Assembly (NCBI GenBank): GCA_965112155.1 | Contig: OZ218100.1 | Length of the DNA: 64,000 bases | DNA from: Podarcis liolepis | Lineage: Eukaryota | Strand: one strand, 5' to 3' | Part shown: piece by piece, positions 39,398 through 48,300 of the stretch | Layout: the number at the start of each line of letters is the position of its first letter | Numbering within the stretch: the stretch's first letter is position 1 | Translations under genes and position numbers: made by a program | Notes under the pieces: generated by a model | What the model was told of the DNA's origin: nothing | Databases searched by the model: none | What the model saw: the letters and a program-made list of their open reading frames with translations, nothing else

Positions 39398-42300
39398 CAG
39401 ATCTTGCATAAATAAAACTCTCATTATGTACTTAAAATCAATTCCGCAGCATAAGGCCAGGATGCCATTTAGAAACTAGAAACTAATCAGGTATTTCACC
39501 CAGAAAAATACTGTCAGAGCTGCTTGAAGATCCTAGCTCACAGAGGATCACGCTAGTCAGCGGTCATTAAGTAAAAGTCTTTATTGAATTACAGTTTCCA
39601 TTCTCACGCTGCTGCGCGCAACTCTACGCCTAGTGGCTAGGTCGGCGAAGCTCCGTCTGAGTCTCCGCCCTGTGTGCACCAACTTAATATCCTAGCCTTG
39701 CTCCACCTTTTCCTCCTGACTGTCCTCCTCTGGGTCCCTCTACCCCCCGGGGCTTCTTCCTTCCGGGATTCTTCTGACGCTGACCCAGACCCTCCTGCCT
39801 CCTTGCGCCGGGCTTTAGGACCTGGTTCCCTTTCGGGGCTGCTTACTGCGCCGCCTTCCTCTGCATTTGAACTTGGCGCGCGCGCCCAACCTTCCACTTT
39901 CCTCTCAACCGTTTCTTCACTCCCCGATGGAGGTGTGGCCACTCCCGACTCATGTCCTCCCTCCTGTGGAGGTGTGGCCACTCCTGACTCATGTCCTCCC
40001 TCCTGTGGTGAGCTGCCAGCGCTTCCCCCCTGGCTCCCTTCCTCTTCCCTGCTTCCTGGCGGTGACGCTGGTCCCGATTTCCAGCTGCTCCCCCCTGAGT
40101 CCTCTCTGGCTCTGTCTTCCTGGGGTGCCCCCCTAGACTCCCCCCTTGCCCTCGCCACTGGTGCTCCTTTCTGTGAATCCTCTGATTCACTGGAAAGACT
40201 AGGAGATCTCGGGTCGTCGTCATCACTCATCTTTTCTTCTGCCTCCTCCCCTTCACTCTCTGTTTCCTCCCTTGCCCGTGCTTCTGCTCCTAAACCCCTG
40301 ACATCCATCCCCCCCTCGAAGCCCCCCATTCCCCCCTCCCCTCCTTCCGGTGCTGGAGCTGGGGGCTGCTGTTGCAAAGGGACGAACGTCGGATATCGGT
40401 CGCTTCCCGTGTCAGGTCTCCATCTGAAGTCTCCCGGGTCTTCCTCCCTGCTCTCGTCGACGACAGTCACCTCCGCTTCCATCTCTGTGCCGCCGTGCTC
40501 GAAACCAGGGTCGTCCCCGAAAACGTCCATGTCCGTCTCTCCCTCACTCCCTCCTGTCGGTGTTGCTCGTCCTGGGCCTTCCAGCCATCGTCTGCGCCAC
40601 TGCTCCTCTGGTCTATCGTCCCACCAATACGAGGGTTCTGATGCAGATCCCGAGGGTGACCCCTCCGGGGAACGGACGTCTCGTGTCGGTTCCTCGTCCG
40701 AGTCGAACCCCCGGAACGTGCTGGCCGAAAGCGTGGGCGTGAAAAGCCAGTCGTCGAAAAAGTCTGCTGGCATAGGTCTATGTGGGAAGAGGGCATGAAA
40801 CTCGTCTTTGAGCAGAGGTTCGTCTAAGGCGTAGCCCGGCACCCAGCTGTTCGCACTGGCCGGGGTGCCCTCCTTGGCGAGAAAGTATTCTACCCCCTCT
40901 TCCCCCCATCTGGAGTCCAAAATCTCAGTGACTTCGTTGATGCGCTCCTTCTGTGCCACTCCCGCGTGCCCTGTTCTGTCTCTGGCCGGACTCGGCACCG
41001 TTCCGGGTTCCTGGAACCTGTGCGGTGCCTTATAGGGAGTGAGCACCGATCTGTGGAATACCGGATGCATTCTGGAACCCTCCGGAAGCGCCAGTCTGAA
41101 AGCTACCGGGTTGACCTGCTCTTCGACTTGGTAGGGCCCCAGTTGTTTATGCCCTAGTTTCTTCTTGGCCAACGACCTGGCCGGCACTGCGTGGGCTGCT
41201 AACCAAACCCAGTCTCCCACGTGGAGCTCTTCTCCAACCCTCCTGTGCTTGTCTGCTTGTACCTTGTATGCGTGCTTGGCCAGCTCCAGGTGGCGCCTCA
41301 GCTGATCGTGGACTTCCTGCAGCTCCGACGCGAACGCATCTGCTGTCTGCGGCTCCCCCTCCCCCATTCTTTCCAGTCCCGGGAAGGTTCTGGGGTGCCT
41401 CCCGTTGTTGGCGAAGAACGGCGTGACCCCCGTGGACACGTGCTTCGTGTTGTTGTAGGCGAACTCGGCAAGCGGCAGGTAATCCACCCACGTCGCAGGC
41501 TGTTGATTTGCATAACATCTCAGGTACTGCTGCATGATGGCATTGACCCGCTCTGCCTGCCCGTTGGTCTGCGGGTGTCTCGCCGACGCCAGGTTGATCT
41601 TGACGTTCAGGAAGCCCATCAGCTTCTGCCAGAAATTCGAGATGAACTGCCGCCCCCGGTCGGACAGAATAGACCGTGGCAGACCGTGAACCTTGAACAC
41701 GTGGTCTATGAACAGTTTGGCGGTTTGCTCCGCCGTGGCCACCTTAGCACACGGAATGAAATGCGCCATCTTGGAAAACAGGTCCACCACCACCAGCACT
41801 GCCGTCTTGCCCCTTGAGCTGGGCAGATCCGTGACAAAGTCCAGGGCCACCCTTTCCCAAGGTTCGACCGGAGTTTGCAGCGGTTCCAACAGTCCGGCCG
41901 GCGGTTTGTGCACTGGTTTGGCCCTCTGGCAGGTGTCACACCTCGCCACGTAGTCTGCGACCTCCCCTCTCATTCCAGGCCACCAGAAATCCCTGGCTAC
42001 TAATTCCACCGTCTTCTCCTTGCCAAAGTGCCCGGCCGTGGGCGCGTCGTGCAGCTGCTGCAGCACCTTGGCTCGAAGTTCGTCTCCCGGCACGTAGATG
42101 GCCCCTTTACGGATGAGCAATCCATCTCTTAGCTGGAAACCGTCGGCCGCTGCCTTGCCCCTTTGCACCTCTGCCATCTTTGCTTGTGCGAAGGAGTCCC
42201 CCTGCAACGCTCGTCGCACCGCCTCTAGGTCCACGGTCGCCGCGGCGCACGCCCACACTGTTGGTGCGAAGATGTGCATGGCGGCCGCTGGTGTTGCGTC

Positions 42301-45300
42301 CTCCAGATACTGTGGCTTACGGGAGAGAGCGTCTGCCATGATGTTGGTGTCCCCCGGGACATACTCTATTCGGAAGTCGAAGTTTGCAAAGAACTCAGCC
42401 CAACGTATCTGCCTCTGGTTCAGGAACTGTGCCGTGCGCCAGTGCTCTAGATTCTTGTGGTCCGTGCAAACCTGCACCGTGTGCTTGGCGCCGATCAGAA
42501 AGTGCCTCCACGCCTTGAACGCTGCGTGAATGGCCAGCAACTCCCTGTCCCAGATGGTGTAGTTCTGTTCGGACTTGCTGAGCTTCCTGGAGTAAAACGC
42601 TCCCGGTCGCCACACCCCCTGCGGGTCTTTCTGCAGCAGGACCGCCCCCACGGCTCTGTCCGAGGCGTCTGTCTCCACCCTCATCGGCTTGCTGGGGTTG
42701 ACATGAAGCAGCTGCTCTTCCGACGCGAAGAGACGCTTGAGTGCCTGAAAGGACTGCTCCGCCTGCTCTGTCCAAACGAACTTCTTTTTCTTGGAGCTAA
42801 GCGTGTCAGTGATGGCCGCTGTCTGCATAGCGAAGCCCTTGATAAACTTGCGATAGAAGTTCGCAAAGCCGACAAACCGTTGGACCTCCTTCCGGTTGCG
42901 CGGACTCTTCCAATCCAACACCGCTCGAACCTTGGCGCTGTCCATGGCGAGCCCCTTGTCAGACAGCTTGTAGCCCAGAAAATCCACCTCCGGCACGTCA
43001 AATTGGCACTTCTCCAGCTTGGCGTAGAGCCTATGTTGCTTTAGCCTGCTCAGCACTTCCTTGACGTGTCCGTCATGCTCCTGCCGCGACTCCGAAAAGA
43101 TCAGGATGTCATCTAAGAAACAGACGCACGTCTTGTAGAGAAGCCCTGCCAACACGTGATGCATAAACGCTTGAAAAACGTGGGAGCCATTTTGCAATCC
43201 AAAAGGCATAACTCTATATTCGTAGGTCCCCAGTGGCGTGAACATGGCTGTCTTCCACTCATCTCCTTCCCGCATGCGAATGAGGTTGTACGCCCCCCGC
43301 AGGTCCAGCTTGGTGAACACTCTGCCCTTCCGTACCTTTGCGAGGAGGTCGTCAATACGGGGCATGGGGAAGTCCGATGGCCTAGTCAGACTGTTCAAAA
43401 TCCTGTAATCCACTACCAGTCTTTTTTGGGGCGTGTTCCGCTTCTTAACAAAGAATACGGGACTGCCCCCCACTGCCCTGGACTCCCGGATGAAGCCGCG
43501 TTGCAAATTATGATCAATGAACGCCTTGAGTTCTTGCAGTTCGTCCTCTGACATGGAATACAGTTTCCCTTTAGGCAGCGCCGCCCCCGGCAGCAGGTCA
43601 ATTTTGCAGTCATATGGTCTGTGAGGGGGTAGCCTGTCTGCCTCCTTCTCGCAGAAAACTTCCAAAAATTCAGCGTACTTGTGGGGAATCGCTTGCAGCG
43701 TGCCTAGCAGCAGCTGTGACTCCTCTTCTTCTCCTTCCTGCCTGGGCACGATGCAGTGTTCAGCACAAAAGGAAGAGCCGAAGGTCAGCTGCCTCTGGTA
43801 CCAAGCCATCGCTGGGCTGTGCTTGTCCAGCCAACTCATGCCCAATACAATGGGCGTGTCAGATAGTTGAGTGACGTTGAAGCTGATGATTTCTCTGTGA
43901 TTCCCAAGTCGCATCACCATTGGTGGCGTCTGCTTCACCACTTGCCCCCCGAGCAGCTCCCTGCCATCCACCGTGACAACCTGCAGGGGCAGTGTGGCCG
44001 GCAGCAACTGCACAGCGTGCCTGTCGACAAAGTCCTGCCCTATAAAGTCCGCATTGCTGCCTGAGTCAATGGTGATTGGTACGTCCATGGTGATTCCATT
44101 GGGCAGCTGGAGAGACGCTGTGAGCCTCACTACTGGTTTGGGCGGGAGGGGGTTCACGGGCTGTAAAATCTCTGGGGACTGCGTCACTAACACGTCTGGC
44201 TGGGCCCCAGTGCCTCTTCCTCCAGCCAGACAGCCTCGTTTCCCTGCTGTGGTCCTCCTTGCTGTGTTGCTGCAGTCACCATTGCTGAGGCTGCAGTGAG
44301 CTTGTGGGGCCTCTGGGGACACTCTTTCGCCATATGCCCTGGCTCCTCACAGACGTAACACTTCCTGTTCCCTCTAGGAGGCTTCGCTTTCACTGCTGCC
44401 GGTGCTAGGGCTCTGGCTGCTGACTGAGCCCTTGCACCTCCCACCTCCATAGGTTCGGTTCCTCCTCCTGGCGGAGGCGTGGATTGCGCCCGCGCTGCTT
44501 CCCTGGGAAAGAAGGAGGGGCCCCCGGCTGGTTCGCGCCCTCCACGCCCTTCGTCCCTGTTCCACGGACGTCCTTCCAGCCTCACCCCCACTGCCAGTGC
44601 CCTCTGCACGACCTCCTGGGTGGTTCGGGGTCTCTCCCCCCTCGCTATCTCATCTTTAATCGAGTTGTGCAGCCCCTCCCAAAAGAGGTCTCTTACAGGA
44701 GCCGAATCTCTGCCCCATTCCAGGGCACTGACCAAGGCGAAAAAGCGGGCATGATACTGCCTGACGCTGGCCCTCCCTTGTCTCAGCCCATGCACCTCCT
44801 TCCGTGCAAGATCCACGTCAATACTTGATAAAAAACACCCATCCATTGCTTTAATAAAGGCATCTGCATTCTGTAGCACCGGATCCTTATCTCTCCATAA
44901 ATTGCGTAGCCATGCTCTCGCATCCCCATGCAGATGGGACATGATGAACCCCACTCTCTCTTGTTCATCTCTAAAGTCTTTATGCAGCAGTTGCAGTGCG
45001 CACAGTACGTCGGCTCTAAAGTTGGGATACTGTTGCAGGTTCCCATCGAAGTGAGAGACCAGCCCGCCTGTCCGTCTCGCCAACCCAATTCCCTCCTGCC
45101 GGGGTGTCTGCTTTGTCAGCACGTCTAACCTGACCTGGAGATCCCTGCAGGCTGCGGCTGCCTCCTCCTCTCTCTTCCTGGATGCGAGAGCCTCGGCGTT
45201 CAGTTGTGCCACCGCGTTTCTGAGTTCCTCTATCTGCTGCTCAGCCGTCATGTCGTCTGCCGTTCGTGAGCTCGCTAGTAGGCACCTGTGTCTCTCCCCT

Positions 45301-48300
45301 CCTCGAGGCTGTAGATGCCCACAAGTGGAGACGGAGCTTACTGTCAGAGCTGCTTGAAGATCCTAGCTCACAGAGGATCACGCTAGTCAGCGGTCATTAA
45401 GTAAAAGTCTTTATTGAATTACAGTTTCCATTCTCACGCTGCTGCGCGCAACTCTACGCCTAGTGGCTAGGTCGGCGAAGCTCCGTCTGAGTCTCCGCCC
45501 TGTGTGCACCAACTTAATATCCTAGCCTTGCTCCACCTTTTCCTCCTGACTGTCCTCCTCTGGGTCCCTCTACCCCCCGGGGCTTCTTCCTTCCGGGATT
45601 CTTCTGACGCTGACCCAGACCCTCCTGCCTCCTTGCGCCGGGCTTTAGGACCTGGTTCCCTTTCGGGGCTGCTTACTGCGCCGCCTTCCTCTGCATTTGA
45701 ACTTGGCGCGCGCGCCCAACCTTCCACTTTCCTCTCAACCGTTTCTTCACTCCCCGATGGAGGTGTGGCCACTCCCGACTCATGTCCTCCCTCCTGTGGA
45801 GGTGTGGCCACTCCTGACTCATGTCCTCCCTCCTGTGGTGAGCTGCCAGCGCTTCCCCCCTGGCTCCCTTCCTCTTCCCTGCTTCCTGGCGGTGACGCTG
45901 GTCCCGATTTCCAGCTGCTCCCCCCTGAGTCCTCTCTGGCTCTGTCTTCCTGGGGTGCCCCCCTAGACTCCCCCCTTGCCCTCGCCACTGGTGCTCCTTT
46001 CTGTGAATCCTCTGATTCACTGGAAAGACTAGGAGATCTCGGGTCGTCGTCATCACTCATCTTTTCTTCTGCCTCCTCCCCTTCACTCTCTGTTTCCTCC
46101 CTTGCCCGTGCTTCTGCTCCTAAACCCCTGACAAATACTTTCCCCTGGAGTGATGATAGAATCATAGAATTGCAGAATTGGAAGGAGACCCGGGGGTTAT
46201 CTAGTCCAGCCTCGTGCAGTGCAAGAATCTCAGCTAAAGCATCCATGCTAGATGGCCACCCAAAGTCTGCTTAAAAACTTCCAATGAAAGAAAGTCCACC
46301 AAAACATGGAGCTCACAAGCTCTCTCTTTTCCTTCAGTTTTCTCACTGACTGCCAGGTTTGCAGCAAACCATAGTTTGCTATTGTATCCAAACCAGACAA
46401 ACTGGGAACACACTACAGTTTGCCTTTAAACCAGAATTGGAAGCCACATTCAAACCAGGGGTGGCTTGCATGGCCCAAAGGATGGAGAAACCATTATTTG
46501 GCATTACATTATTTTGCCCACGATCTGCATATTTTAAAATTTGTCTGCATAGTTTGTCTGAGCTACAAATTTGCAATCCGTTTATAAATAGCTGACCTTT
46601 TAAGGAATCCAAAGCTCTGTACAAGTGGAGTTCTAAATATATTAATCAAGCTACCTATACTTCCCATAATGTCTGCATAGGTAGGTACATGTTGGATATG
46701 TGCTATGTTACACTTATCCTCAACTGTTCTAGTATCCTCCTTTCTCCATTTGTAACACCAAGCAGAAGTCTTGGTTCATGATAGATTCTAGCCTAATCTA
46801 CATAGCGTTGTTTTATTATCTCCCCCTTCTGTGTGCTTTGTAAACACAACTCATTTTTAGGTTTAAGTTCTGGTTACTGTTTTCTAAAAGTCTGCTGGCT
46901 TGACATAGTGTCCTGGCTTGTGCCATGGTCTGTATAGATTAATTGTGATTTATTTGTATGTTTGAACCCACATCAGCCAATGGTTTGTGGCCAGCAAAGC
47001 AGAATGTGAAACCATGGCTTGAAATTGGTTTAATGAATCTCTGCTTGCATCAACCATGGTTTTTTGTTATGTCCAAACCCAATGTCCTGTTTAATTCTTA
47101 CATAGTTCCAGAAATGCAAAGCAAAAGCAGCTAGAAAATTAAACTAACATGATGCAAAACAAGGCACAGTTACTCTGCTGGTCAACATACCACAGTTAAA
47201 ACAAGCTGTGGCTTAGCGTTATGTCTGAACACAGCCTTTTCCTAAGGTTTGCACGCATGTAAACAGCCTCACTGTCATGTTTCTGTAGTGTTTATGTCAA
47301 GTACTACAGGTTTTTTCCCCCTCCCCTGTGGATCTACAGTTCTGTTACCAAAGAAGATCAGGAAAAAGAGAGCCCTGACCAACCAAGTCCTGCCCCAACA
47401 GATGAACCTTCTGAAGCCCTAAACACTCCAGAAAGTGAGAGCTACAAAGAGAATCACACCAGTGACTCTGATTCAGATGGGCCAATACTCTACACAGATG
47501 ATGATGATGAAGATGATGATGATGGTAGTGAAAGTAAGCCATTAAGCCATGTTTACAAGGGGGAGGGAAACATACTTGTTGAGCAGAGAATTATACCGCC
47601 TTGTCAGAAGAGTCAAGTTCCACTTTATTTGGGATCCTCCATCAAGTCAGACCGTTACCCAGGCAAACGTCTACGTAGTTAAGGAATACCACCTTGCTTA
47701 CTTCAGTTGTTGGAACTGCAGAGGTGATGGCACAGTACCAGTTGCAGCAGGATGTATGTGCAGGCGCATAAACCTTATAGTGTAGCACGCTATTATACCG
47801 TTATCGCAGGTTGAGGGACTGTGCTGATAGAGAGTGACTTGCAGCAGTCTTGCATTGTAGCATACTGCTAATGTTGAAGGTCAGAGATGTGGGGTGGGGA
47901 AGCTGGTTTATATTCCCAGACAAAAGTCCTCCAGATCTCTCTCAGGTTTCAGCAAAGATGTGTCTGCTGAAATTGCTCCTTTGGACCTCTTCCCAGGTCA
48001 AATCAGGTACTCCATTTCACACAGAAGCCTCATGCTCTGTGAACTTTCATTTAATCTAATTGCAATTTTACACATTTTTTAAAAATATTTTTTTTAATGA
48101 GCATGAAGAAAGACATGCCTGTGTGAGGCAGCTGCAGCCATCACCAACTTCATTTCCCCCAAATGTATCTGGGGGATACATATTCCCCCAAATATGTGGG
48201 CCAGAGGCATTTGGGGAAAGTTAACATTGTGGTGGCTGCAACTGCTTGGCCTAACACTTCTCCAGTACCAGGGTGCTTGGCAGCCCTTGCTTTTGCTGCC

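Follow-up and report, generated by a model that had tools for sequence, protein, structure and literature searches.

The window analyzed here, a 64,000-nucleotide stretch of contig OZ218100.1 (assembly GCA_965112155.1) from Podarcis liolepis, holds one copy of a Ty3/gypsy long terminal repeat (LTR) retrotransposon, and our subject is a short motif in the C-terminal tail of its integrase that resembles the docking peptides of cellular transcription regulators. The element and all of the features described below lie on the minus strand. Its 5' LTR (45342-46133) and 3' LTR (39512-40303) are each 792 bp long, begin and end as TGTCAG...CTGACA, and are 100% identical, and the copy is flanked by a 5-bp target-site duplication, AATAC, at 46134-46138 and 39507-39511. 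The gag open reading frame (ORF; 44187-45251, 354 amino acids) matches the Pfam families Retrotrans_gag, Ty3_capsid, and zf-CCHC. The pol ORF (39637-44322, 1,561 amino acids) matches RVP_2, RVT_1, RT_RNaseH, Integrase_H2C2, rve, and SH3_Tf2-1, and it thus encodes protease, reverse transcriptase (RT), RNase H, and an integrase with H2C2, rve, and SH3 modules, followed by a chromodomain and a long tail. The two ORFs overlap by 135 nucleotides in different frames. A G-rich purine run directly 5' of the 3' LTR (40304-40335) forms the polypurine tract, through which the pol frame reads. Because the LTRs are identical, the target-site duplication is present, and both gag and pol are complete, the element is an intact and very young Ty3/gypsy copy of lacertid lizards, and the order of its Pol domains from protease to integrase, the LTRs, and the target-site duplication agree with a chromovirus-type element. 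Ten ORFs flanking the element, sought as a possible host gene, gave no Pfam match.

The family to which this copy belongs is extremely abundant. Comparison of the region 40310-41100 with contigs from four sequencing runs (X3, X6, X12, and X13) recovered hundreds to thousands of short contigs per run at a likeness of at least 85%, and near-identical sequence is present in runs labeled with at least 10 coded organisms, from 12 studies. One of the four, X6, is a small run guessed to be RNA, and it holds contigs at an identity of at least 99%, which does not by itself demonstrate transcription.

Directly before the motif lies a predicted chromodomain (40783-40938, approximately Pol residues 1129 to 1180). 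Pfam called no chromodomain in Pol at E < 0.01. An early AlphaFold model of 266 residues, built on seven close sequences, was uninformative (predicted local distance difference test [pLDDT] score of 36). A model of residues 1125 to 1221, built on a 15-sequence alignment, folded from approximately residue 1131 to 1180 into three strands and a helix with a pLDDT of 84 to 89, and its best Foldseek matches were all chromodomains of the HP1/CBX type. The top match was HP1 (1kna_A), with a template modeling score of 0.85 on the target, a root-mean-square deviation of 1.0 Å, and 35% identity. In addition, the corresponding domain of one homologue matches HP1 by sequence (E = 2.6e-8). The structural model thus indicates that a chromodomain fold is present at the C terminus of this integrase. 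It also bears out the preliminary description of this locus, which had placed the motif after a chromodomain, since both the fold and the HP1 match put it just beyond that domain.

The motif itself has three parts and an acidic flank. It begins with an acidic-hydrophobic segment predicted to be helical, ADFFDDWLF (40741-40767, residues 1186 to 1194), whose F...F pattern is kept in relatives. The linker TPTLSAST (40717-40740, residues 1195 to 1202) is eight residues long and rich in Ser and Thr, and it leads to the core FRGF (40705-40716, residues 1203 to 1206), which has a Ser at position -2 and is followed directly by DSDEE (40690-40704). Translation of 39637-44322 reproduces exactly both the FRGF reported earlier at 40716-40705 and the 26-residue context quoted with it, starting from ADFFDDWLF at 40767-40741. 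In the AlphaFold model, a helix spans ADFFDDWL (model residues 62 to 69) outside the chromodomain fold, with a pLDDT of approximately 64; from the linker onward, through FRGF and past it, the score is below 50. The tail as a whole is rich in Gly, Glu, Ser, and Pro and carries a net charge of -34 over 355 residues. These predictions indicate that the motif sits in an intrinsically disordered region. A sequence search of the PDB with the 42-residue motif stretch returned only chance matches (E > 0.8, to citrate synthase and myosin), as expected because the query is a short linear motif.

Farther along the tail (40495-40632), a 17-residue Trp-rich block is followed by a 15-residue degenerate second motif. 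The latter, at 40539-40495, corresponds to the weaker echo of the motif that had been reported from the sequence; the stretch is there, but it is not FxGF. It aligns with a canonical second motif, consisting of a helix, an acidic linker, and FxGF, in the more distant relatives P0011, P0013, P0029, and P0030. The Trp-rich block, SYWWDD.PEE.WRR.W (40582-40632), which separates motif 1 from its degenerate counterpart, is conserved in the window's family, and it aligns with the second-motif helix of other families.

This arrangement recalls a known class of ligands. Motifs that interact with TFIIS N-terminal domains (TNDs), or TND-interacting motifs (TIMs), consist of an obligate short helix presenting F, V, L, or I, an acidic linker of 8 to 16 residues enriched in Glu, Asp, Gly, and phosphorylatable Ser and Thr, and then FxGF, which is optional in TIMs generally and yet present and essential in all known ligands of LEDGF and HRP2 (PMC9987994). 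Peptides that bind the integrase-binding domain (IBD) of these proteins, termed IBD-binding motifs (IBMs), follow the consensus (S/E)xFxGF (PMC7337902). A 20-residue peptide of DPF3a, LFGSTSESDTSTFHGFDEDD, which contains STFHGFD, binds the IBD of HRP2; this binding is stronger with phosphoserine at position -2 and is abolished by F-to-A substitution (PMC7337902). In flies, JIL-1 docks on the LEDGF orthologue JASPer via DFxGFDE (PMC6877644).

The window's STFRGF fits the IBM consensus cited above, with Ser at position -2 as in DPF3a and ASK. The window reads STFRGFD where DPF3a has STFHGFD, and the close relative P0001 has the DPF3a sequence itself. The distance from the last Phe of the helix to the first Phe of FxGF is 9 residues in the window versus 11 in DPF3a. 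The linker is within the length range of TIMs, and it contains five Ser or Thr residues and no acidic residue. The likeness to LEDGF- and TND-interacting ligands proposed in the preliminary description therefore holds in part: the architecture and the consensus agree, and the window's linker is not of the acidic kind. Since this linker is rich in Ser and Thr rather than acidic, its phosphorylation would probably be needed for the putative docking in the window's family. The combination of a short amphipathic helix, an acidic or phosphorylatable linker of 8 to 10 residues, and (S/E)xFxGF matches the TIM/IBM class by its sequence features.

We searched for relatives using word-based protein searches with the Pol tail and with one of the proteins found, P0011, and, exhaustively, using phmmer against 1.84 billion representatives with the chromodomain and tail as the query. 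The Pol-tail searches recovered five Pols of Podarcis muralis, with 62 to 92% identity in the searched regions, as well as a pair of distant chromovirus Pols. The phmmer search returned only eight proteins, and the search with P0011 added P0029, P0030, and one fish protein (Labeo rohita P0031). Named sources of the relatives include P. muralis and P. lilfordi, while P0011 came from Logan and P0013 from ENA. Apart from the query, the word-based searches yielded solely Podarcis proteins, three proteins from ENA samples (P0006, P0007, and P0013), and the fish protein. A scan of JGI metagenomes with the chromodomain-tail alignment gave 157 pattern matches, none of which were confirmed.

Retention of FxGF among relatives was the check set in advance for the motif, and FxGF is kept in every one of the 13 tailed sequences. 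In all 13, [STED]xFxGF occupies at least one of two sites, 21 to 22 residues (motif 1) and 59 to 68 residues (motif 2) after the chromodomain. In the window's own family (the window, P0001 to P0005, and P0008), motif 1 reads PMPA[DE][FY]FDDWLFTPT[LC]S[AG]STFxGF followed by [DAS]S[DA]EE, with F, G, and F fixed and x being R, H, or Q, and motif 2 is degenerate. A second set of families (P0010, P0011, P0012, P0029, and P0030), 31 to 34% identical to the window over the chromodomain and tail, has acidic linkers. Their motif 1 is RFWEE[EQ]F-[GA]TTD..E..-FxGF, as in RFWEEQF-ATTDEEEED-FVGF, with the variants VRSLQEVF-ETTEDGEE-FEGF in P0012 and FEEF in P0029, and a motif 2 of the form W..[VG]F, an acidic or Ser-containing linker, and FRGF occurs in P0011, P0029, and P0030. 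Two of these proteins, P0011 and P0030, carry two motifs in tandem. P0013 has lost motif 1 and retains motif 2 as QWKTVF-ESDENEDTD-FLGF. Counted over the 12 residues that precede the first Phe of FxGF, the acidic linkers carry a net charge of -4 to -7 (P0010 to P0013, P0029, and P0030), and these relatives fit the canonical acidic TIM form without any need of phosphorylation. The outgroups (the P0006 cluster and P0031) have a short basic tail with neither motif and no FxGF, the distant Pol P0007 ends right after the chromodomain and has no FxGF, and P0009 carries a frameshift immediately ahead of the motif.

Among all relatives, the x of FxGF is R, H, Q, V, or E, and position -2 is E, S, or T. 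The linker keeps its length and yet changes its letters completely between groups. With F, G, and F invariant and x free, the linker letters swapped, and the motif duplicated in tandem, this pattern is as expected of a functional, selected short linear motif.

Could the motif have arisen by chance in a tail rich in Phe, Gly, and acidic residues? A lone FxGF is weak evidence, since approximately 8% of tails of such composition would be expected to hold one, and an FVGF also occurs in RT at residue 483. However, [STED]xFxGF appears in only 0.4 to 3% of composition-matched shuffles per tail, and its presence in all 13 tailed sequences is, on this comparison, more than chance. The matching positions of the motif in these sequences and the mostly synonymous variation around it, described next, likewise speak against coincidence. 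We rejected a chance origin given the conservation and the shuffles, and we attach almost no credence to it.

We examined selection using variants among the contigs of the four runs. The counts cover 40 listed common sites of the 64 variant sites, with 24 further sites outside them, and contigs drop rare variants. Over the chromodomain and the helix-linker-FxGF segment (residues 1130 to 1206), there were 13 synonymous and 2 replacement variants (F>L and D>E), compared with 10 synonymous and 15 replacement variants in the flanks (residues 1097 to 1129 and 1207 to 1305; Fisher p = 0.007). All eight variants within residues 1181 to 1206 fall at third codon positions. In contigs of sister subfamilies, similarity to the window ends exactly at 40705, where the FxGF codons finish; beyond it, these contigs continue with a flank of the SSAEE type, as in P0004, P0005, and P0008. 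Taken with the comparison of relatives, these sequence data indicate that the helix, linker, and FxGF form a genuine short linear motif, maintained by selection, in a disordered integrase tail.

It is also conceivable that the helix and FxGF belong to the chromodomain fold, as a C-terminal extension that packs within the molecule and is conserved for structural reasons. The conserved block does run unbroken from the chromodomain to FxGF, and the pLDDT of the helix, near 64, would be compatible with such an extension. But the linker and FRGF score below 50, and the Foldseek match spans only the approximately 50-residue chromodomain, not the helix, linker, or FRGF; on these two counts we disfavored the extension. 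Distant relatives, moreover, change the linker completely, and the second copy of the motif lies well away from the domain, approximately 45 residues farther along the tail. A folded extension seems to us highly unlikely.

Chromodomains of the HP1 type read methyl-lysine via an aromatic cage. At the cage positions, the outgroups P0006 and P0031 have Y, W, and Y (or F), whereas the window's family has N, K, and T, and the tailed families with acidic linkers keep only the W of the three residues. The window's domain is thus a cage-less variant that lacks the classical three-residue methyl-lysine cage. Because the cage residues are gone, and judging from what is known of the HP1 cage, the chromodomain of the window's family is unlikely to read methyl-lysine. 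Cage loss and FxGF presence co-occur in this small sample, in which the outgroups with a full cage have no FxGF tail.

If the chromodomain no longer reads methyl-lysine, the tail may supply another means of targeting. Through the motif, the intasome could dock on LEDGF/HRP2 or on a similar TND protein; docking of this kind would tether integration to transcribed chromatin marked by H3K36 methylation. Such a tether would replace the reading function lost by the cage-less chromodomain; in the window's family, phosphorylation of the Ser/Thr linker would probably be required for it, and its logic would be the same as that by which the C-terminal segment of Ty1 integrase works with Pol III. We put the chances that the motif docks on a TND/IBD of the LEDGF/HRP2 type, and thereby tethers integration to transcribed chromatin, at about even. 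The fuller account, which we advance tentatively and hold to be just short of an even prospect, is that a group of lizard chromoviruses gave up methyl-lysine reading by the chromodomain and instead mimics a LEDGF/HRP2 ligand, with either a single motif or two in tandem and with phosphorylation control in the window's family, tethering integration to H3K36-methylated chromatin. Such mimicry would represent convergence with lentiviruses on a host factor, via a different interface, a linear motif.

Alternatively, the motif may be a TIM with another TND partner (TFIIS, IWS1, Elongin A, PNUTS, or MED26), in which case integrase would dock directly on elongating RNA polymerase II complexes. The helix and acidic linker are obligate in all TIMs and individual TIMs are selective among TNDs (PMC9987994), which leaves room for such a partner, and the tandem motifs of P0011 and P0030 are arranged as in IWS1. 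However, FxGF is optional for these partners and essential for LEDGF/HRP2, and here it is the most strictly conserved part of the motif. We consider this alternative clearly unlikely.

A different possibility is that the conserved motif serves another partner or step and has nothing to do with TND targeting, for example as an acidic-hydrophobic peptide of the activation type, as a regulator of how active or stable integrase is, in assembling particles, in entering the nucleus, or in shielding the element from silencing. Conservation and purifying selection show function and not the partner, and the invariant, nonacidic TPTLSAST is atypical of TIMs. The three-part architecture, the Ser or Glu at position -2, the 9- to 10-residue spacing from the last Phe of the helix to the first Phe of FxGF, and the seven-residue identity with DPF3a nevertheless point to the IBM class, and we regard a job of this other kind as fairly unlikely.

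Several observations weigh against docking on LEDGF/HRP2 and have to be set beside these arguments. The window's motif has a net charge of only -1 over the 12 residues before FRGF, with almost no acid, and TPTLSAST is invariant among close relatives, which is unusual for a linker that should be variable. The predicted helix has only moderate confidence (pLDDT of approximately 64), and the window's family has only a degenerate second motif. All tailed relatives with a named organism are Podarcis, so that shared ancestry over a limited depth could partly explain the conservation, and only 40 of the 64 variant sites underlie the comparison of synonymous and replacement changes. Finally, FxGF-type peptides might serve another partner altogether.

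The very end of Pol is encoded by the LTR. The pol frame remains open across the polypurine tract and approximately 222 codons farther, into the U3 side of the 3' LTR (39637-40335), and it closes with an Arg/Lys-rich stretch followed by ILSWC (39676-39729). The 5' LTR contains this LTR-encoded ORF as well (45470-46150). Within each LTR, a 39-bp unit is present in two full copies and additional partial ones (39889-40043 and 45719-45873), which in the pol frame reads as a repeated 13-residue peptide. In three proteins of diverged families, P0008, P0011, and P0013, the reading frame likewise extends into the LTR and finishes with a basic run and LL.W[CK]. Because the basic run and this ending are kept in diverged families, the LTR-encoded end looks like real coding sequence. 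Its basic residues could form a nuclear-localization or nucleosome-contact element, and in the proposed tethering the basic C terminus may add a second contact at the level of the nucleosome.

Tethers between integrase and host proteins explain where retroelements land. Only a handful are known, and none is known to use a cellular TIM or IBM linear motif. Binding of the lizard motif to LEDGF/HRP2, if it occurs, would make the element a natural example of a retroelement mimicking a docking peptide of transcription elongation, would represent a second and independent route into the LEDGF pathway besides that of lentiviruses, and would illustrate the replacement of a chromodomain targeting module; the tail peptides would also be new natural ligands for studies of TNDs and IBDs. 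Being young and very abundant, and found in many related lizards, the family allows predictions about its insertion sites to be tested on population data. Our search of the open literature found no description of a TIM or IBM in a retrotransposon integrase. A 2023 study of LTR elements in flies considered LEDGF a possible tether and said that no data support the idea (PMC10018349).

The closest parallels are the cellular IBD and TIM ligands (DPF3a, JPO2, PogZ, IWS1, MLL1/KMT2A, ASK, MED1, and JIL-1), which present the same parts in the same order in a disordered setting; some of these proteins, like some of the lizard relatives, carry tandem copies. The cellular ligands are host transcription regulators, however, while here the motif is a predicted one in the integrase tail of a retrotransposon, and the window's linker is rich in Ser and Thr and nearly uncharged, unlike the acidic linker of cellular TIMs.

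Among integrating elements, the integrase of HIV-1 binds the IBD through a folded interface of its catalytic-core dimer and not through an FxGF peptide, whereas the mode proposed here would be true mimicry of a cellular linear motif. The host factor and the outcome would be the same as for HIV-1 integrase and LEDGF/p75, namely, integration into transcribed gene bodies marked by H3K36 methylation (PMC9987994).

Short, disordered C-terminal tethers of integrase are a second point of comparison, and here Ty1, murine leukemia virus (MLV), and Ty5 share with our proposal the kind of tether and differ in the partner and the class of motif. Like Ty1, MLV and Ty5 use short C-terminal targeting peptides of integrase, which bind the ET domain of BET proteins and Sir4, respectively. 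We know of no TND or IBD ligand reported for the integrase peptides of any of the three. For Ty1, a C-terminal segment of integrase tethers it to AC40 and Pol III (PMC7459421, PMC10050235).

Finally, the window's element has the same Pol architecture, with a C-terminal chromodomain, as the chromoviruses whose chromodomains read methyl-lysine (the Tf1/MAGGY type and, here, P0006 and P0031). Compared with these, the tailed lizard elements have lost the aromatic cage, fully in the window's family and at two of its three residues in the acidic-linker families, and have added a long acidic tail bearing FxGF.

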